Sequence record: OR545507.1
Length of the DNA: 64,000 nt
Direction: 5' to 3' (one strand)
In this document: one piece after another, positions 12,005 to 41,854 of the stretch
How the letters are laid out: each line of letters opens with the position of its first letter
How positions within the stretch are numbered: position 1 is the stretch's first letter
The notes under the pieces: model-generated
Databases searched by the model: none
Seen by the model: the letters and a program-made list of their open reading frames with translations, nothing else
Told to the model about the DNA's origin: nothing
Translations under genes and position numbers: made by a program

Positions 12005-12321
12005 AATGAGTTAAATCCATTGTTTAAGTATGTTTCAATATTAATTTTACCAACAGGATTACTACTGTGAACAAAGTACTCAAACGGTTCTTTAATATTA
12101 TTATCAAACATATAATCAATAAGAAACTTAGCAAAAGAATATCCAGTCTTTTCGTCTTCGCTCACATCACCCAAGTCATGGTCGAATGATACAAATGCTG
12201 GAATTCCATTTTCAATAACATATTCACATGCACTTTTAAAGTCACGACATACCACCATATCTTGGTTTGGATAATATAGATTTGCATCACGAATATCATC
12301 CAAAAACATTGAGTAAGACAT
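12001..12321 (-). CDS. cyclic-phosphate-processing receiver-like domain protein
   Basis: FLDDIRD, SFDHDLG, TGY, HSSNPVG motifs. Confidence 0.75.
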   Translation of the reverse strand: MSYSMFLDDIRDANLYYPNQDMVVCRDFKSACEYVIENGIPAFVSFDHDLGDVSEDEKTGYSFAKFLIDYMFDNNIKEPFEYFVHSSNPVGKINIETYLNNGFNSL

Positions 12322-12330
12322 GTTAAACTC

Positions 12331-12882
12331 CTATAGATAACTAATTAGTAAGTTTTCTTTTTGAACCAGATACTCCAATTCTTGTTTTGCTGTACCGATG
12401 AAGTTCTGTGTCATAAGATTATTATATCCCGCTTCTCGATTTTGTCCCTTAGAATAACGAGAAATATGACATAAATTTACACCAGCAACTTCTGCACTTG
12501 CATGTTTAGCATTAGTGTATCCATCTCTAATGTGTTTCAACTCGTCATAGGTTACTTCATAGCTAAAACTGTGACTGTTTGCACCTGGGTAAATTTCAAA
12601 AGTTTTGAGTGGTCGAAGATGGGAAACAAAAATATTGTAATCCATTTCTTCTTGAACTTCACGACGCAACGCATCTTCTAGTGAGATATCAGTACTTTCT
12701 ACGGTTCCACCACATCCACCAAGAAGACCATCCCATCGTAATTGCAGTAATACTAAATTTACTTCTGGTATATCATTCAACTCATAGTTTTTGTAAGGGT
12801 TGCATTTTCTTGCAAAGAAATAACAAAATACAAAATTTGCACGTGTGCCATATTCACCAAAGGGAACTTCTTTAACACTCAT
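12331..12882 (-). CDS. Nudix hydrolase, NUDT16-like
   Basis: Nudix box GGTVE...LEDALRREVQEEM; LRWDGLLG and NFIGTAKQEL resemble NUDT16 from memory. Confidence 0.8.
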   Translation of the reverse strand: MSVKEVPFGEYGTRANFVFCYFFARKCNPYKNYELNDIPEVNLVLLQLRWDGLLGGCGGTVESTDISLEDALRREVQEEMDYNIFVSHLRPLKTFEIYPGANSHSFSYEVTYDELKHIRDGYTNAKHASAEVAGVNLCHISRYSKGQNREAGYNNLMTQNFIGTAKQELEYLVQKENLLISYL

Positions 12883-15406: not shown

Positions 15407-15426
15407 TTTTGTTTAGGAAGATATAA

Positions 15427-15455
15427 ATAATATAGTACTTAAACACTTAAGTCAA
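15427..15455 (-). promoter_or_regulatory. sigma70-like promoter
   Basis: TTGACT-17-TATTAT, with AGTACT in the spacer. Confidence 0.55.
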
Positions 15456-15517
15456 ACTTTTTCTGTACTTAACTCAAATTTTTAAAAATAAAACTTAAGG
15501 TGTACAGTTTATAACAG

Positions 15518-15546
15518 ATCATATCATACCACTGATGTTTTGTCAA
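15518..15546 (-). promoter_or_regulatory. sigma70-like promoter (extended -10)
   Basis: TTGACA-17-TATGAT with TG. Confidence 0.65.
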
Positions 15547-15616
15547 CTAGTTCATGGTGCATCTGATGTAAAAAACAAATATATTTCATACTTATATTTA
15601 AAAAAGGAAATAAAAT

Positions 15617-15994
15617 ATGAAAGCTATCGCAGCACAAGGTAAACTACCATTCAATATCGGCGGGTTTTGTGTAACCGCAGCTAATATAAACGGTGAATTG
15701 AAATATAACTTGAACATCTTTAATCAACGTTCTAGTTGTGTTTACGATCTCATTGATACTGATTTTAATGTTTATCGTTTTGTAACTATCACTAGTTATG
15801 ATAAAGATAAAATTAGATTAGATGCATCTAAAACAGCATTGGAAATTGCACCAACTCTAGCCAAAAATACTTTTTGTATTAAGATTGACGATAGTGCATT
15901 TGCTGAATCATTCCAGTTTCATAAAATTAAATTGAGTACTGGGGCGATGAAATATCACCCTTGGGATTTGTATTATTGCAACCTCCCAGGTTAA
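15617..15994 (+). CDS. hypothetical protein, the only convincing plus-strand gene
   Basis: AAGGA RBS, lies in a gap, ends at a bidirectional terminator. Confidence 0.75.
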   Translation: MKAIAAQGKLPFNIGGFCVTAANINGELKYNLNIFNQRSSCVYDLIDTDFNVYRFVTITSYDKDKIRLDASKTALEIAPTLAKNTFCIKIDDSAFAESFQFHKIKLSTGAMKYHPWDLYYCNLPG

Positions 15995-15995
15995 C

Positions 15996-16023
15996 AAAAA
16001 AGGAGCCTTGTGGCTCCTTTTTT
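15996..16023. terminator. bidirectional terminator between convergent genes
   Basis: AAAAAAGGAGCC-TTGT-GGCTCCTTTTTT. Confidence 0.85.
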
Positions 16024-18670: not shown

Positions 18671-19366
18671 TTACACCCACTCTTCTACACCACCGCGACG
18701 CTTAACTAAGTACTTGCCTTCTTCGTTACGTGGACCAAGAATAATACCATCAATGAAACCATGTTCACCATATTCAAGTGCTTCTTCTGCATTTAACCAC
18801 AAATCGCGGTCAGCATCTTTTAGTAATTGTTCATGTGATACACCTACAGCTTCTGCAATTTCTTTGGTCAACAATGTATTCAGTGCATCAGAATGTTGTA
18901 GGGAAATCTTCTGGTCTGTAATTAGACCTTGTGTACCAGAACTTACTTGGTGACACATGAAGTATGAGCGTTTACCACCTAAACGGAAACCTTTAGTCCC
19001 AATAACAGATTGTGTATAGCAACCCATTGATGCTGCATAGCCCATTACTACAGTGCGAATTGGCGAAATACAAGACTTAGCAACATCTGCAATACCCAAA
19101 CCTGCGTGTACTGAACCACCCGGTGAACTAATGTAGAATGTAATAGGGGAATCACCTTGTGAGTCTAACCATACCAATTGTTGTTTGATGATATGTGCCA
19201 TTTGATCATTGAAATCAGTATCAAGGAAAATGATACGGTCTTGCATCATACGAGATGCTAGATCATATGTACGTTCTGAACCATTAACTTTCTCAACTAC
19301 GTAAGGAATAGAAATGTTACGTACTTCGCCATTAGCATAACCACCAAACATGAATTGTTCAACCAT
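18671..19366 (-). CDS. clpP: ATP-dependent Clp protease proteolytic subunit
   Basis: DLASRMMQDRIIFL, YISSPGGSV, AASMG (Ser), MCHQ (His). Confidence 0.9.
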   Translation of the reverse strand: MVEQFMFGGYANGEVRNISIPYVVEKVNGSERTYDLASRMMQDRIIFLDTDFNDQMAHIIKQQLVWLDSQGDSPITFYISSPGGSVHAGLGIADVAKSCISPIRTVVMGYAASMGCYTQSVIGTKGFRLGGKRSYFMCHQVSSGTQGLITDQKISLQHSDALNTLLTKEIAEAVGVSHEQLLKDADRDLWLNAEEALEYGEHGFIDGIILGPRNEEGKYLVKRRGGVEEWV

Positions 19367-19400
19367 TATTAATTTCCTCTATTATTTCGTTGTTGTGAGT

Positions 19401-19429
19401 ATTATATCACTAAGATTTAAAATGTCCAA
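19401..19429 (-). promoter_or_regulatory. extended -10 promoter upstream of clpP
   Basis: TTGGAC-17-TATAAT with TG. Confidence 0.55.
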
Positions 19430-19430
19430 A

Positions 19431-19871
19431 CTATTTTACTGGAATATTTGAAAAGAAATCAGTCATCCAATACGCCGTCTCTTTGTTGAATAATACTGGA
19501 TCAAACTTAAGTAACTCAACATGACTTGTATCATACACGCTTGTATCGGTAATGTCAAACAAAGTTTTAGTACTGAATAGTGGATTACTCACTAGAAAGT
19601 AGTAATCAGCAGTAGTGCTAATGTCATCATAAAACACACCGTCATACCATCCATCATCATATACATAAACAGAATCGTCATGAAGATAGTAAACTTCTAT
19701 ATGTAAACTCAAGTTCTTCATGGTTTCAATCATTTTTGCCGTATGAGGATTTAACTTATTGACATTTTCAAACACATAAGAGTGTTTTTTATTCATATCA
19801 ACAAATGAAAATATTCGTACTGAACGTATATTCATATTACTCCAAATAAACAAGTGAATTAATGAAATCAT
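19431..19871 (-). CDS. hypothetical protein
   Basis: ORF track. Confidence 0.55.
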   Translation of the reverse strand: MISLIHLFIWSNMNIRSVRIFSFVDMNKKHSYVFENVNKLNPHTAKMIETMKNLSLHIEVYYLHDDSVYVYDDGWYDGVFYDDISTTADYYFLVSNPLFSTKTLFDITDTSVYDTSHVELLKFDPVLFNKETAYWMTDFFSNIPVK

Positions 19872-20220
19872 ATTTCAATTTATCATCAACATAATTCAAA
19901 TCAACTTTAATCATCGGAGCATGGGAACGTATAGACAGTGTTTCCATAAAGTACTGATTAAGTTTGTATGTATGGAAAAGATGAATATCTCGTTTCAATA
20001 CCACCATTACTTCCCCGAACAGATCACAGAGTTCAACTTCAGTGTTAGTTGGGTCAAACCCATAACGATTCTTTAATGTACGTGGTTCTTTATTTCGATA
20101 ATAATGCACAGCTTTATTACTATTCACTAACAAGTGATGATATGCATTACTATAAACTGAGCAAATAACTCGGCTTGGATAATTGGTATATTCTGGCAGT
20201 TCAAAATAAATTAATGACAC
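19837..20220 (-). CDS. hypothetical protein
   Basis: ORF track. Confidence 0.6.
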   Translation of the reverse strand: MSLIYFELPEYTNYPSRVICSVYSNAYHHLLVNSNKAVHYYRNKEPRTLKNRYGFDPTNTEVELCDLFGEVMVVLKRDIHLFHTYKLNQYFMETLSIRSHAPMIKVDLNYVDDKLKYDFINSLVYLE

Positions 20221-20232
20221 AATATCCTCTCA

Positions 20233-21036
20233 TTAAATTTCAAATACAAATTTAGGATTGTAATCAAAATTCTCACAAGCTCCACTGTATGATTCATAGC
20301 CTCGTGGATTACAAATGATACGTGTCTTACCAATGTGGTAGTCAAAACTACTATGAACATGACCATGAATCCAAACATCAGCACCCAAATCTTCAATGTA
20401 CTGATCCATATCGGAACAGTAACAACCATTCAGTGAATCATTTTTATATTTTGGTGAAACACTTTGATAACTTGGTGCGTGATGGGTAACCACGATGACC
20501 TTGAAATCATTATCATGCATAAAGCGAACTGTGTCAATAGAATTTTTGATAAATTGTTTATCTTTGTGATGCATAAACTCAGTATCATCTGGTGTCAGTT
20601 TCTTACGCCAAGGCTCTGATGTTGTTCCATGACGGATATGTTTGTAATCGTTCATCTTCAGACGAGCATCAAACTTCGTCAAAGAATTACCTTTATCGAA
20701 GTCTGTCCACAGAGTACTACCAACAAGCAGTACTCCGTCCAGCCATACAAATTTGTTTTGCAAAAAGATGAAATTTGGAATCTCATCTTGCATATCGGAC
20801 AGTACTTTATGCGTTTTGTGGATATTGGAACCATAATATTCATGATTGCCAGGAACCAGTACTACATTCTTAAACTGCTTACATAGTGATTCTATACCAG
20901 TACGGTAACGACTGCGTTTAACTTCATCGAAGTCCCCAGCAATAATCAGTACTGTATCACTGTAATCACCACTATGGAGGTAATCAGTCCCACCGTGTAC
21001 ATCAGATGTTACAACAAATTTCATAATCACCTCCAA
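20233..21036 (-). CDS. calcineurin-like metallophosphoesterase
   Basis: SDVH, AGD, PGNHEYY, THHAP, HGHVH. Confidence 0.88.
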   Translation of the reverse strand: MEVIMKFVVTSDVHGGTDYLHSGDYSDTVLIIAGDFDEVKRSRYRTGIESLCKQFKNVVLVPGNHEYYGSNIHKTHKVLSDMQDEIPNFIFLQNKFVWLDGVLLVGSTLWTDFDKGNSLTKFDARLKMNDYKHIRHGTTSEPWRKKLTPDDTEFMHHKDKQFIKNSIDTVRFMHDNDFKVIVVTHHAPSYQSVSPKYKNDSLNGCYCSDMDQYIEDLGADVWIHGHVHSSFDYHIGKTRIICNPRGYESYSGACENFDYNPKFVFEI

Positions 21037-39773: not shown

Positions 39774-40316
39774 TTAGAGACAGTTGTGTACTATCTTATC
39801 AAAAGTACTACTGTCAATGTTATATTCATATAAAAATTTAAAATGTGAACCGTAACGCATCATCAGATTAAACTCTTCTTCAGTATTGAACTTGTAATCA
39901 TGAATAGTCTCAGGGGTACATTTTAAACCCAAGAACTCTATAATTTCAGATGTTACATCATATCCTGAATTGAAGTATTTAACCCAAACACATTTTCCTT
40001 GTGGGTTGTATTTTCTATATTCTCCTTCTAGTTCTCCTTTAATAATATGAGCCTTAACACTTATTGAATTATTACTATATCTTTCTTCAAAATAATTACC
40101 ATACTGGGCTTTTGATATTGTTGGTTTTTGAGTAGGAAGTAATTTAACTGAAGTTACTTCAATTCCATTTTGTAATTCCTTTATATAAGAAATGCATCCT
40201 TTTTCTTTAATAACCACATATCCAGTAAAGATATCTTCGTCTTGTGATTGATTAATGCAATCATCAAAATTCAAAGTTTTATAAGTAACAGTTTTTTCTT
40301 TTCTAATAAATGCCAT
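39774..40316 (-). CDS. hypothetical protein with MORN-like segment and degenerate FQ module
   Basis: EGEYRKYNPQGK; TEEEFNLMMRY; start moved to MAFIRK behind an AGGA RBS. Confidence 0.6.
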   Translation of the reverse strand: MAFIRKEKTVTYKTLNFDDCINQSQDEDIFTGYVVIKEKGCISYIKELQNGIEVTSVKLLPTQKPTISKAQYGNYFEERYSNNSISVKAHIIKGELEGEYRKYNPQGKCVWVKYFNSGYDVTSEIIEFLGLKCTPETIHDYKFNTEEEFNLMMRYGSHFKFLYEYNIDSSTFDKIVHNCL

Positions 40317-40429
40317 CATTATTCCTATGGAAACATCAATGAATATACGTGACGTTGATTGCATCAACATCAGTAGAATTATCATGCTACGCATGTCTAA
40401 TTCTACACAAGTACTATTTTCTTTTAATT

Positions 40430-40935
40430 AATATTGACGGGGTTTGCTTGAGCATATTTCATCCCCCCGCAGGGGAAAGAACAAAAAAATTTGACGCTGG
40501 TGGCCTTCACATAGTTCATATCACGAATTCTCTTACGAGACGAAAGCGGGTTGCTCTGTTTCTCTCTATCGCGGTTCTTGTAGCAACGGTCGTCGGTCTT
40601 AAACATCCCGACACATAATACAAATACCATATGACCAGTACTTGTATTTGATTTCACAAAATTTGGACGCAACTATATTGTATAATTCCGACCGCATATT
40701 TCTTATGAAATCTCCCTTAGATAATTGGTAAGGTGCGATCCTTATATGTCTATCGAGGAACTCTCTTTATCCTATTGGAGTTCTTTATACAGCCGCATTG
40801 CCGTGAGTGGTTCAAACTATGCCATCATCTAACGGGTTTCATCTGCTGTTCGTACTGAAAGGACTACTCATCTACCCTCTACATTTTCGAGTGGATTAGG
40901 CTTTTAATCATTTCCTTATGGGAACCTTTCAGGAT
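40430..40935 (-). ncRNA. candidate large structured non-coding RNA or leader
   Basis: No credible ORF, GC-richer than flanks, at least six helices, downstream of a promoter; family not recognised. Confidence 0.4.
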
Positions 40936-40936
40936 T

Positions 40937-40971
40937 AAAAAAAGGTGACTAACATATTATGTTGTCACCTT
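40937..40971 (-). terminator. rho-independent terminator
   Basis: AAGGTGAC...GTCACCTT plus T7 on the minus strand. Confidence 0.7.
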
Positions 40972-40973
40972 AT

Positions 40974-41001
40974 ATTATATCATTAACTTATCATTTGTCT
41001 C
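40974..41001 (-). promoter_or_regulatory. extended -10 promoter
   Basis: GAGACA-16-TATAAT with TG. Confidence 0.5.
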
Positions 41002-41854
41002 AGTTATATTCGGTTTTTTCTGTGAAATTTGTTAGTATATCAACACTAAAACTTCGAATAACCTCAATCCTGCTTGGCATGAAACGATGTTTATTTTTAA
41101 TATACAACTCATCATCTTCAATAAAAGACGTAAAAATAAATGTCATATCTTCACGTGGAATTTGTAAAATATCACACATTTCATTTGCCGATGCTACTGG
41201 TGAATCGTTGTAGTACTGAGAGTATGCACTAGATTGGCGACCGATTATAATAGAATTTCTGATTAGAAAATTACTACAGTACTGAAAATCTTTGTAGTAC
41301 TTTTCAATAATGTAAGGCATAAGTGCTTCTTTCACGTCTTCATAACCATTAGTACTATCAATTGCTATACAGTAATCTTCACGTTCTTTTTTCTCATGAT
41401 GGTAATCATAAACATACTCAAAGAATGAATTTTTATTTAATGAATCATTTAAACCAACTGACCCACTATAGTATGATTTTCTATCATTCATTCGATCATC
41501 TGGGCATGATGCATACATAGAAGTGTCATGTGATGATGTACCAATATAAATTTTCTTAGTAATATGATTATACGCTATGTAATCATAATCTTGAACTCCA
41601 GTCAGCATTAACTGGAACATTAAATCATCAGGAACATCAATTAACGGGTACTCAAACTTCGAATATCTACTGCGGCAGAAGTTCTTTTCAAATGCTCGGT
41701 ATGCGATAAAATCTTTTAGATTTTTACAAGATTCATGTTCATGAGCACTACTGCTACGTACATTGACATTAGTCGATGTGCAATATCCATCCGAATCTTC
41801 GGTGAAGTTACCAGCATAATCCTTATTGTAGTCAACGATTAGATAAAGTTTCAT
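41000..41854 (-). CDS. hypothetical protein with FQ-like module and a YxxxxxxxxxYIG segment
   Basis: DDLMFQLML; YIAYNHITKKIYIG. Confidence 0.65.
   Translation of the reverse strand: MKLYLIVDYNKDYAGNFTEDSDGYCTSTNVNVRSSSAHEHESCKNLKDFIAYRAFEKNFCRSRYSKFEYPLIDVPDDLMFQLMLTGVQDYDYIAYNHITKKIYIGTSSHDTSMYASCPDDRMNDRKSYYSGSVGLNDSLNKNSFFEYVYDYHHEKKEREDYCIAIDSTNGYEDVKEALMPYIIEKYYKDFQYCSNFLIRNSIIIGRQSSAYSQYYNDSPVASANEMCDILQIPREDMTFIFTSFIEDDELYIKNKHRFMPSRIEVIRSFSVDILTNFTEKTEYN

Follow-up and report, generated by a model that had tools for sequence, protein, structure and literature searches.

The window analysed here, a stretch of 64,000 nucleotides from sequence record OR545507.1, belongs to the Escherichia jumbo phage vB_EcoM_G17. 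Between two minus-strand genes, G17_00509 (39774-40316) and G17_00510 (41000-41854), positions 40317-40999 form a gap of 683 nt without any annotated CDS. As pointed out by an earlier reading of the sequence alone, this is the largest gene-free gap of the window, and a mechanical ORF map of the whole stretch contains only one other of comparable size (15407-16022, 616 nt). The same reading described the gap as GC-richer than its flanks, which is indeed the case for its core (40489-40937), with 40.5% GC vs 31.8-33.4% in the flanks and a window mean of 33.0%, a level reached by just 0.9% of the 450-nt windows. Read 5' to 3' on the minus strand, the gap consists of an extended -10 promoter, a core RNA of ~450 nt (40937-40489) and a conserved tail of ~170 nt that extends to the ribosome-binding site of the next gene; it is a self-contained minus-strand transcription unit. 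Searches of the window with blastn and nhmmer found this copy and no second one.

The promoter, already recognised in the sequence-only reading as a TG-TATAAT motif, was located by a consensus scan at 40974-41003 (minus strand), with the TG of the extended -10 at 40982-40981, TATAAT at 40979-40974 and a TGAGACA motif in the -35 region. Among 68 non-redundant homologs of the unit, TGnTAnnnT occurs upstream of helix P1 in 59 and the exact TATAAT in 56, and a recurrent TG(G/A)(A/G)AC motif is found in the -35 region. Transcription would start near 40967, a position overlapped by the intrinsic terminator of G17_00510 (40942-40971, minus strand; GGUGAC...GUCACC and a U run, annotated in MK327931.1). 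Because of this overlap, the terminator would insulate the unit, halting the transcripts that come from upstream but sparing the RNA's own transcript, which would lack the 5' arm of the hairpin.

Covariation and fold of the core RNA

The earlier description of the gap as helix-dense cannot be sustained by single-sequence folding, where the minimum free energy is unremarkable (z = -1.34 vs dinucleotide shuffles, with 11 of 100 shuffles folding equally well), and it is the comparison of homologs that supports a structure. The covariation analysis suggested in that reading was done with about 65 non-redundant homologs and gave a very strong signal. A nested structure obtained with RNAalifold on the raw MAFFT alignment was partly wrong because the RNA has pseudoknots; in its place we searched all against all for diagonals that are compatible and covary. 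Pairs were counted in the two core domains, with slid partners and 500 shuffles as controls. In the 5' domain (alignment A3), 96.1% of the cells are paired compared with 31-43% after sliding, double changes affect 31 of 42 pairs, and the covariation score is reached by none of the 500 shuffles. The 3' domain (alignment A2) shows 92.5% of paired cells vs 36-43%, double changes in 39 of 48 pairs and a covariation score of 0.489 vs 0.06-0.09 in the controls, again with 0 of 500 shuffles at that score; the controls of the two domains together span 0.04-0.09. Altogether, compensatory double changes occur in 70 of the 90 pairs, at least three pseudoknots among them, beyond what the controls give, as is generally asked of a conserved structured RNA. 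The core has at least 15 helices and at least three pseudoknots, and about 100 of its unpaired nucleotides are nearly invariant; the frequent G-U pairs assign the RNA to the minus strand. At the level of sequence comparison, these data prove that a pseudoknotted fold of the minus-strand RNA has been conserved.

The 5' domain (40713-40937; this and all the following elements are on the minus strand) contains helices P1 (40925-32/40855-62), P2 (40920-24/40912-15) and P3 (40889-94/40875-79), the latter closing the conserved loop GAAAAUGUA, as well as P1b (40865-67/40852-54), which forms a pseudoknot with P1. The domain also includes P4 (40845-49/40789-93), P5 (40832-35/40801-04), P6 (40779-83/40758-62) and P7 (40741-43/40730-32), together with a possible loop contact at 40880-83/40794-97. 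The junction (40649-40729) comprises an invariant UAAGGGAG block, helix P8 (GAUUUCA/UGAAAUC) and a variable insert. All 5 pairs of P8 covary with several pair types in a 68-sequence alignment (columns 307-311/365-369), and the UAAGGGA block is unchanged in every homolog aligned. The inserted sub-domain, of the UACAAUAUAGUUGCGUCC type, is present in some paralogs but not in others, and recurs at two different helices. In the 3' pseudoknotted domain (40489-40653) we find P9 (40642-48/40617-23) and P9a (40637-40/40625-28), whose loop L9 (40629-35) pairs with 40515-21 through a 7-nt 'code' that differs between paralogs. They are accompanied by P10 (40609-13/40591-95), by P11 (40583-87/40550-54), which crosses both P12 (40569-73/40522-26) and P13 (40562-66/40542-46), by P14 (40536-40/40529-33), and by P15 (40504-08/40493-97), weak in the window copy. 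Five of the six helices listed by the sequence-only reading coincide with elements supported by covariation: 40617-27/40638-48 (P9/P9a), 40592-96/40608-12 (P10), 40550-55/40582-87 (P11, a pseudoknot strand), 40758-63/40778-83 (P6) and 40462-66/40472-76 (the G-rich hairpin of the tail). The sixth, 40715-19/40729-33, has no such support; its CCUUA strand pairs instead with an upstream UAAGG to form the covarying P7.

The tail has a fixed order of box 1, an optional terminator, a G-rich hairpin, box 2 and two further hairpins; these tail hairpins were read by eye, whereas the pair counts given above are those of the two core domains. Box 1 (40483-40496) carries CGUCA at 40496-40492 followed by a U7 run at 40489-40483, a site where 27 of the 68 homologous units (~40%) have an intrinsic-terminator hairpin. 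The window copy has lost this terminator and shows no stem there. The G-rich hairpin (40456-40482; CCCC at 40475-72, a UGC loop, GGGGGG at 40468-63 and then AUGAAA) is found in every unit, with a nearly invariant 3' strand, GGGGGGAUGA. C/U variation in its 5' strand keeps either G-C or G-U pairing, which fits an RNA transcribed from the minus strand. In the genome of a relative, the G-rich motif is found at the RNA units and nowhere else, and box 2 likewise occurs in all four units and at no other place. In the window, box 2 (CAAACCCCGUCAAU, 40433-40446, with CGUCA at 40439-40435) is followed by an A+U-rich stretch. Only three departures from CGUCA were seen among the 68 units, each of them in box 1 and box 2 jointly. 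The distal tail (40318-40432) contains a GAAUUAGA block, a hairpin at 40354-40368 and a last hairpin at ~40318-40345, which in the window copy includes the Shine-Dalgarno (40326-40323) just upstream of the start codon of G17_00509 (40316-40314). Homologous tail hairpins retain their stems despite differing sequences, and most units keep a loop GAACGAAGUGAG and a UUGAC...GGCAA stem; the window copy has the most diverged tail of all. The possibility that box 2 and a TATAAT generally form a downstream promoter was considered and dropped, because conservation of the -10-like hexamer does not extend to the island clade described below.

Known RNA families and coding potential

The Rfam search proposed in the sequence-only reading was performed over the whole 64-kb window with Rfam 15 (4227 models) and gave no match at the gathering thresholds. 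When relaxed to E ≤ 10, the gap showed matches at chance level only, the best one (27 bits vs a gathering threshold of 60) falling on the terminator hairpin, and no family was matched either by one island unit and one unit of phage GAP32. ARAGORN detected no tRNA or tmRNA genes in the window, and in the predicted fold the 5' end of the RNA pairs ~70 nt downstream (P1) and not with the 3' end as in those molecules. RNase P RNA gave no match at E ≤ 10, and a CR-V-like ACAGAGCAACCCGCUU has its partner nearby (P11/P13) instead of in a distant CR-I. The earlier statement that no tRNA, tmRNA or RNase P signature can be recognised is borne out. Group I introns and RNase P RNA share with this RNA a size of 350-500 nt, long-range pseudoknots and invariant junction nucleotides; they differ in that the unit matches none of their covariance models, has its own promoter and lacks flanking exons. 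For group I introns in particular, Intron_gpI was not matched at E ≤ 10 in three units, the terminator of the upstream gene precedes the unit and the flanking genes are complete. Moreover, only 7 nt lie between the crossing helices P11 and P12, and the strands that would correspond to P3 and P7, between which group I introns have their P4-P6 domain, are separated by only 7 nt, which does not suit the group I helix order. Group II introns and HYER-type ribozymes were also discarded, with no match at E ≤ 10 and no domain-V-like hairpin among the covarying helices, and three representative units had no match (E ≤ 10) to the models for GOLLD, ROOL, OLE, raiA and HEARO-type large ncRNAs. Neither this RNA nor its repeats are described in the literature that we searched on jumbo phages, RaK2-like phages and large structured RNAs, and a survey of candidate structured RNAs in IMG/VR reports motifs of 29-151 nt only. 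The RNA family is new, as judged from sequence, matching no described RNA family. Covariation combined with the negative Rfam and ARAGORN searches thus supports the original suggestion of a structured ncRNA or long leader without a known signature.

A protein-coding gene, or a decayed pseudogene, is a hardly credible explanation for the gap. Two mechanical ORFs occur within it, 40424..40672 (82 aa) and 40349..40618 (89 aa), and small hypothetical proteins are annotated there in a few deposited relatives. However, these ORFs have no Pfam match and are absent from the paralogs, and the sole PHROG match is a marginal one (19 residues of the 89-aa ORF, E = 0.003). Among 1283 pairwise indels, just 185 (14%) are multiples of three, the frame and the strand of the longest stop-free stretch vary from one homolog to another, and substitutions are compensatory across helices. 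Translation of 40424..40672, named in the sequence-only reading among the findings that would speak against an RNA, has no family match, no ORF in paralogs and no multiple-of-three bias in its favour.

Copies in jumbo phages and bacterial islands

Every RaK2-like jumbo phage keeps four or five units homologous to that of the window. The 62-71 phage records with matches, at four to five sites in each genome, are RaK2-like without exception, and no copy was detected in non-RaK2 phage records or in a collection of 72,556 plasmids. Within RaK2-like phages, the paralogs are ~70% identical, diverged, well spread and oriented like the local genes, as seen for the four co-oriented copies of OR844650.1. 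They group in five position-specific clades (support 98-100%) common to GAP32, CBB, Serratia BF and Yersinia fHe-Yen9-04, the copies being old and position-orthologous across genera. Their spacing is more even than that of randomly placed points (smallest gap, P about 0.005-0.06), and recombination that removes direct repeats lying close together could be reason enough for the wide spacing. GC skew, examined as a sign of origins, has no inflection at the units and tracks gene orientation, which counts against origin activity there. Neighbouring genes differ between copies, and those located downstream are unrelated to each other; the unit is therefore not tied to one protein, and the proximity of a methyltransferase one gene away, remarked on in the earlier reading, has to be seen as incidental.

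In bacteria, the unit occurs in Enterobacterales islands of ~10-12 kb with an integrase and defence genes, including that of E. coli LR-29-1, which lies beside ffs, and those of Buttiauxella, Serratia, Citrobacter, Silvania and Enterobacter, in which no structural or replication genes were found. Each island carries a single complete unit beside the integrase, just within one end and directed inward, and in most of them nothing follows downstream on the strand of the unit. The unit is the sole sequence that the islands share with a RaK2-like phage. Island copies contribute to the compensatory changes, and the structure is therefore under selection in the islands too. Some rows of the 'island' clade derive from a T4-like phage fragment, so that islands may hold the unit for another reason, such as a decoy.

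Several copies per genome, presence in unrelated mobile elements and a sub-domain inserted at two different helices would suit a selfish mobile RNA element that moved through phages and islands, for instance what is left of a transposon or an intron-like ribozyme without an ORF. We regard this origin as very improbable, as the copies are ancient and position-orthologous without recent spread, lie outside host genes under their own promoter and with no exon continuity, and have no match to the models of group I or group II introns at E ≤ 10; nor did we notice any target-site duplications.

Possible functions of the unit

Same-strand genes lie downstream of every phage unit, and the tail hairpins, which covary in an RNA-like manner and reach the ribosome-binding site of the next gene, fit a leader too. 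Such a cis-regulatory leader would be a sensor of the riboswitch or attenuator kind, though a very large one, gating downstream transcription and translation and, in the islands, controlling antisense transcription into a convergent cI-like repressor. The final hairpin of the tail adjoins the Shine-Dalgarno, with the window copy's hairpin including it, 40% of the units have a terminator after the core and before the tail, and alternative pairings are possible between box 1 or box 2 and the 5' strand of P15, as well as between GAUGA and box 2. As it has no terminator, the RNA of the window copy probably runs into G17_00509. Nevertheless, the 60% of units without a terminator have an equally conserved core, and a structure of 450 nt with three pseudoknots far exceeds known leaders. 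Terminators in only 27 of 68 units, unrelated genes downstream of the phage copies and usually none on the same strand in the islands are not what an attenuating leader or riboswitch would show, and we consider this role improbable.

The complexity of the fold and its invariant junction nucleotides resemble instead those of ribozymes and RNP RNAs. In this line, the unit may encode an abundant early RNA that works in trans through its three-dimensional fold, be it as a ribozyme, a subunit of a phage RNP or a scaffold that assembles itself in the manner of ROOL or GOLLD; this is one of the main rivals of the explanation that we prefer, although we find it rather doubtful. The gene copies would give dosage, and island copies would be titrating decoys or hijackers of a phage partner. 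Such a molecule would be in keeping with a discrete unit with its own promoter, a predicted insulation from upstream transcription and a terminator in 27 of 68 copies, and with the selection on structure in the islands. The paralog-specific 7-nt code of L9 is also expected if a molecule has to pair exclusively with itself or with others of its type. Among the large ornate RNAs found in phages and prophages, GOLLD and ROOL, which have Rfam families of their own and cryo-EM structures (PMC12286853), are similar in having hundreds of nt, many helices, a phage or prophage location and their own transcription unit. They differ in their models, unmatched here at E ≤ 10, and in lacking the 4-5 position-conserved paralogs per genome and the conserved non-core tail of this family, whose hosts are Enterobacterales and their jumbo phages. 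A role in trans leaves unexplained why five paralogs stay at fixed positions across genera, neither homogenised nor lost, and why the core is everywhere accompanied by a conserved non-core tail with its pair of co-varying boxes, nor does it give a clear reason for islands to keep just a single whole unit beside their integrase.

Our preferred explanation, tentative and in our estimate somewhat short of an even chance, is that the unit would be an RNA-based cis-acting module for replication or mobilisation, copied by the islands to hitch-hike. Its own promoter, the position-fixed paralogs, the tail motifs found only at the units and the jointly changing CGUCA boxes argue for it. In this cis-acting model, RNA polymerase would fire the unit promoter early, and then either of two options could follow. 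The folded core could direct the 3' portion of the transcript to form a persistent hybrid in the G-run/A+U-rich tail or, alternatively, offer a landing pad for phage replication proteins recognising the two CGUCA boxes. The RNA would prime leading-strand synthesis in the direction of transcription, giving the phage four or five origins, and during infection the phage would also amplify an island with one unit, which could then be packaged and transduced.

A precedent for the first option is RNA II of ColE1, a structured pre-primer of plasmid replication of about 500 nt with a sigma-70-type promoter, whose fold governs its 3' part and where a G run is important for the persistent RNA-DNA hybrid. 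Transcript size, promoter type and G run are alike, and the likeness may extend to the role of the hybrid. The two RNAs differ in having no sequence relationship, in the few stem-loops of RNA II compared with the pseudoknotted core, and in the terminator that many units have ahead of the G run. Preceding the G-run/box 2 tail in ~40% of units, this terminator would sever the proposed primer from its site.

Phage T4 has at least five early origins (oriA/C/E/F/G), each needing a promoter, an R-loop RNA primer and an A+T-rich unwinding element; oriE combines an early promoter with direct repeats, and plasmids with T4 origins replicate in T4-infected cells (PMC3016281). The units described here are similarly dispersed at several sites per genome and have a promoter. 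An A+U-rich stretch follows box 2, in a genome that is 67% A+T as a whole. T4 origins have no common motif, ~100 bp are enough for them and no structured RNA is needed (PMC3016281), whereas the units, whose origin role is only putative, are homologous to each other, measure about 650-800 nt and have a constrained structure. The fold is far more elaborate than known RNA-primed origins need, which counts against the cis-acting module.

As for mobilisation, Pseudomonas islands with an integrase and defence genes but no transfer genes have been described as satellites of a jumbo phage (PMC12595487). These I55-type islands, located at tmRNA and transduced by the jumbo phage, have no common RNA or cis element reported (PMC12595487). 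The Enterobacterales islands equally occur in bacteria that jumbo phages infect, and carry an integrase and defence cargo but no genes for transfer, capsids or replication; they differ in host genus and helper phage, and their mobilisation is only putative. In its full form, the proposal would make the large pseudoknotted RNA a specificity element for replication or mobilisation, the units RNA-defined origins or hitch-hiking signals, and the islands jumbo-phage satellites that pirate by means of the RNA unit alone, which we think possible rather than likely.

The list of complex structured RNAs of this size is short (GOLLD, ROOL, OLE, RNase P and self-splicing introns), and each new class of large RNA has led to new biology. 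The comparative support for this one is unusually clean, and the system is culturable, as E. coli K-12 can be used with Sharanji, G17 or 121Q. A testable role is indicated by the ancient fixed paralogs, by the tail with its co-varying boxes and by the sharing with defence-gene islands of the hosts. Should these islands be satellites, the unit is an obvious candidate for the signal by which jumbo phages transfer defence islands, a question that arises from the Pseudomonas work (PMC12595487), and it would be, if this is true, the first natural complex structured RNA to serve as a cis 'ticket' for phage-mediated island transfer. Even if the cis-acting model is wrong, an early phage RNA of this complexity would be a strong candidate for a new ribozyme or RNP.

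The gap: coding capacity and known RNAs

The 701 bases around the unit, a minus-strand RNA gene made of a promoter, a ~450-nt core (40937-40489) and a ~170-nt tail, are 100% identical in blastn against phage records to Escherichia phage vB_EcoM_G17 (MK327931.1), an Asteriusvirus of the RaK2-like jumbo phages, and to phage Sharanji (window position = G17 position - 270,449). The unit lies between two hypothetical minus-strand genes, G17_00509 (39774-40316) and G17_00510 (41000-41854), in a gap left unannotated in most deposited relatives, and for which the G17 record contains a single annotation, a terminator (40942-40971). The sequence-only reading had singled out this gap as the largest and visibly GC-richer, which is borne out: it spans 683 nt by annotation, the next comparable one being 616 nt (15407-16022), and the core reaches 40.5% GC where the window averages 33.0% (sd 3.3%, 450-nt windows), a value attained by only 0.9% of such windows. 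The second gap, of ~616 nt, is also ORF-poor, with no minus-strand ORF of at least 60 aa nor plus-strand ORF of at least 150 aa; it is not a homolog of the unit, of which nhmmer locates just one in the window, and it has no Rfam match at gathering thresholds. Outside the window, the G17 record keeps another ~1.9 kb (19040-20934) with one predicted terminator and no annotated CDS, which shows no blastn similarity to the unit.

The two mechanical ORFs of the gap give no Pfam match, and the sole PHROG match is a marginal one covering 19 residues of the 89-aa ORF (E = 0.003). Neither ORF is found in the paralogs, and 14% of the 1283 pairwise indels with respect to homologs are multiples of three. 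A coding gene is on these grounds rejected as highly improbable, and translation of 40424..40672, which would have spoken against an RNA, finds no backing at the sequence level in either Pfam or the paralogs. As for known RNAs, ARAGORN agrees with the initial impression that no tRNA or tmRNA is present, and Rfam 15 gave nothing for the whole 64-kb window at gathering thresholds and chance-level matches only at E<=10 for the units of the window, of an island and of Cronobacter phage GAP32. Full-text literature searches returned no account of this RNA or these repeats. The RNA is alike in kind to GOLLD and ROOL, as a large, ornate and phage-borne orphan, but it belongs neither to them nor to any other Rfam family when membership is tested. 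In size and pseudoknotting it also comes close to group I introns and RNase P RNA, but fits neither their models nor their topology; that it could be a mobile ribozyme seems to us very unlikely.

Fold of the core RNA

Helices were found by searching all alignment columns against one another for pairs that are compatible and covary, from which a consistent set was extracted (P1 to P7 in the 5' domain, P9 with its loop L9 to P15 in the 3' domain), and were examined by pair counting on two independent MAFFT alignments, with partners slid by 1-3 columns as controls. In the 3' domain (40489-40653, 66 sequences), 92.5% of the cells are standard pairs versus 36-43% in the slid controls, and changes on both sides affect 39 of the 48 pairs (559 cells, versus 52-88), for a covariation score of 0.489 against 0.06-0.09 that was reached by none of 500 shuffles. 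Similar figures were obtained for the 5' domain (40713-40937, 65 sequences), with 96.1% paired versus 31-43%, double changes in 31 of 42 pairs and a score of 0.491 against 0.04-0.08 (0/500 shuffles). Three crossing interactions, each supported in its own right, complete the fold: the L9 hairpin loop forms 7 bp with a strand lying 110 nt further downstream (98.5% paired, double changes at all seven), P11 crosses over P12 and P13 (100%, 99.7% and 99.7% paired, respectively), and P1b crosses over P1. A fourth contact, between a GAAAAUGUA loop and CAAUGCGG, shows one-sided changes only, and P15 is weak (67% paired). Moreover, some pairs are G-U or U-G in most sequences, such as the U-G found in 49 of the 57 scored at columns 16/27 of the 3' domain alignment; these would become A-C mismatches on the opposite strand, which places the RNA on the window's minus strand, codirectional with the flanking genes. 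In the core alignments, some 100 unpaired nucleotides vary little or not at all, including the blocks CGACCGUU, GAAAC, AACCCGC, CACGGCAAUGCGGC, GAUAGACAUAUAAGG, UAAGGGAG, ACCCGUUAG and CAGAUGAG.

The proposal of a structured ncRNA with no known signature is therefore upheld by strong covariation and the lack of Rfam 15 matches. Comparative analysis recovered five of the six helices originally drawn and discarded the one at 40715-40719/40729-40733; its CCUUA strand pairs instead with an upstream UAAGG (P7), covarying as AAG/CUU, AGG/CCU and GAG/CUC, whereas the UAAGGGA block never varies. The description of the region as helix-dense could not be sustained from a single sequence, which folds no better than its shuffles (z = -1.34). 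A sub-domain of ~30 nt (UACAA-NNN-AG-UUGCGUCC type, with AAAUUU/AAAUUU flanks) seems to be inserted in P8 in some paralogs and in P14 in others (sites at window 40649-40729, and at 12144-12337 and 6497-6687 of the homologous sequences L007 and L029), behaving like a portable RNA module.

Promoter and tail

An extended -10 promoter is present on the minus strand, as had been claimed, with TGnTAnnnT in 59 and an exact TATAAT in 56 of the 68 units, and the -35 region (window 40974-41003 and homologs) carries a recurrent TG(G/A)(A/G)AC, not TTGACA. These phages also encode an RpoD-like sigma factor (PMC11895373), whose holoenzyme is one candidate for use of this promoter. In the window copy, the terminator hairpin of G17_00510 (40942-40971) lies downstream of the -10 (40974-40982), so that both signals interlock; overlapping the presumed RNA start, the hairpin would halt upstream transcripts and spare the RNA's own. 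In other paralogs a terminator sits just upstream of the promoter.

The tail is kept wherever the core is kept. Its features were read by eye, except for P15, which went through pair counting. It opens with this hairpin, whose 3' strand is a CGUCA (box 1, 40496-40492). In 27 of the 68 units an intrinsic terminator comes next, of which the window copy retains only a U7 run. Then come a G-rich hairpin with an almost invariant 3' strand, GGGGGGAUGA, and a 5' strand that varies between C and U, a second CGUCA (box 2, 40439-40435) within a conserved CAAAYCYCGUCA, an A+U-rich stretch, a hairpin with a variable stem and a conserved GAACGAAGUGAG loop, and a last hairpin, UUGAC...GGCAA, with a conserved A-G mismatch, which in phages immediately precedes the Shine-Dalgarno of the next gene. 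In the genome of OR844650.1, an unannotated near-identical relative, the box 2 motif occurs in all four units and nowhere else, and the G-rich hairpin, by the pattern used, in three units and nowhere else, the fourth copy having a variant. Only three departures from CGUCA were seen among the 68 units (UGUCA twice and CGACA once), each in both boxes jointly, which suggests that the boxes have the same partner, be it a single protein or a strand complementary to both.

The window copy combines an intact core with the most diverged tail (weak P15, no terminator), and its last hairpin takes in the ribosome-binding site of G17_00509, into which it is probably read through. This copy would fit a giant regulatory leader, an explanation that does not work for islands where nothing lies downstream or for the 60% of units lacking a terminator, and that we regard as unlikely for the family.

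Copies in phages and islands, and their possible role

Among 50,697 phage records, blastn detected the region in 62-71, all RaK2-like jumbo phages, with hosts in Escherichia, Salmonella, Klebsiella, Erwinia, Yersinia, Serratia, Cronobacter, Pectobacterium and Xanthomonas; it is absent from the other phage records and from 72,556 plasmids. The window holds one copy (blastn, nhmmer), and each phage genome carries copies at 4-5 separate places, with 66-100% identity. OR844650.1 has four, at ~18, 128, 208 and 262 kb, in one shared orientation and ~70% identical to one another, and their alignment alternates near-identical blocks with variable insertions, as is the mark of a structured RNA. Scanning IMG/VR and collections of metagenomes and genomes by pattern, with nhmmer as the filter, brought the set to 146 matches, with 111 complete units and, at a 93% identity cut-off, 67 non-redundant sequences. 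In a maximum-likelihood tree, the core sequences resolve into five clades, one per genome position (~32, 95, 174, 259 and 335 kb), common to Cronobacter GAP32, Pectobacterium CBB, Serratia BF, Yersinia fHe-Yen9-04 and metagenomic jumbo contigs with 98-100% support, so the duplications predate these genera and the copies have been held in place without homogenisation. Neighbouring genes vary from copy to copy. All copies are oriented with local genes, which by itself is hardly informative because transcription uses that strand over most of the genome. Copies are also spaced out: no two are closer than 53 kb in GAP32 (P = 0.0045 against five points placed at random on a circle), and P lies between 0.02 and 0.06 in three further genomes. 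As these genomes are related, this amounts to essentially one observation, and Sharanji has fixed ends and a terminal repeat of 20.7 kb.

A genome scan revealed complete units in chromosomes of Serratia fonticola, Serratia spp., Citrobacter amalonaticus, Silvania hatchlandensis, Enterobacter chinensis, Buttiauxella and unnamed Enterobacteriaceae, and in 2 of 5,426 complete E. coli genomes. In every island the unit, with promoter, core, covarying helices and tail, is found just within one end of a small integrated element, facing inward and adjoining a tyrosine or large-serine integrase or, in Serratia, at the end opposite the recombinase. Two islands are readable in full. The one of E. coli LR-29-1, ~10.5 kb beside ffs, contains an IS3-broken integrase, hypotheticals, the unit, three hypotheticals, a three-gene mSLOG-DUF4326/DUF488/DuOB cassette (L405:9997-11728; PADLOC candidate PDC-M45, with PDC-M45A for DuOB) and a resolvase. 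The Buttiauxella island (~12 kb) encodes an integrase, the unit, a convergent cI-like S24 repressor, a Cro-like HTH protein, a 286-aa protein, LprI, a resolvase, an nSTAND3 NTPase, AbiGi and DUF4238. Neither has capsid, packaging or recognisable replication genes, and blastn and tblastx of these two islands against the jumbo-phage genome leave the unit as the sole shared sequence, except for a 39-residue match of DUF4326 (OR844650.1, ~221.3 kb). In LR-29-1, three close repeats of (T)ATCGATCGTT (L405:7960-8040) follow the unit after ~400 nt, ahead of the next gene, and look like iterons or operators. The S. fonticola island (NZ_CP183218.1) has a large serine recombinase at one end and the unit at the other, and contains a tandem pair of ParB/RepB-like genes; it borders on tilS and on two rof genes in tandem.

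In the tree, E. coli and Citrobacter island copies fall beside the phage 174-kb clade, and most island copies form an old separate clade that includes a T4-like phage fragment, so the family extends past the sequenced RaK2-like phages. This 15.7-kb fragment (IMG/VR 3300031414_000131) has its unit between a baseplate gene and an endonuclease VII gene that adjoins gp47/gp46-like nuclease genes; its metagenome of origin also yielded a 371-kb jumbo contig with several units.

Altogether, the unit is an autonomous RNA gene under strong constraint, together with a conserved tail; phages carry it in several copies at fixed positions, and islands share it. For its function, we tentatively infer a cis-acting, RNA-based replication or mobilisation module: conserved positions and a tail accompanying the core indicate a role at the locus, the jointly varying boxes resemble paired recognition sites, and islands devoid of replication or transfer genes hold this unit and nothing else from the phage. 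Its invariant G run just past a structured ~500-nt transcript recalls ColE1 RNA II, a likeness that may point the same way. T4 would offer a precedent, with at least five dispersed origins needing a promoter, an R-loop RNA primer and an A+T-rich region, and plasmids bearing such origins replicate in infected cells (PMC3016281); the unit may operate similarly to either system. For one jumbo phage, integrase-plus-defence islands lacking transfer genes have also been demonstrated to be its satellites (PMC12595487), which by analogy would favour such a module. However, its fold goes far beyond the needs of any known origin RNA, 40% of units terminate ahead of the tail, no skew signal appears at the units, and their wide spacing can be explained neutrally. 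The main rival, possible although less probable, is an RNA that acts in trans as a ribozyme, RNP subunit or scaffold and is produced early and in bulk, with island copies as decoys or hijackers; this reading accounts best for the fold and worst for the position-fixed paralogs and the tail.

Whether as a cis-acting module or otherwise, what sequence comparison supports to an exceptional degree is a real, hitherto undescribed family of large pseudoknotted RNAs, whose distribution suggests a concrete role in the traffic between jumbo phages and genomic islands.
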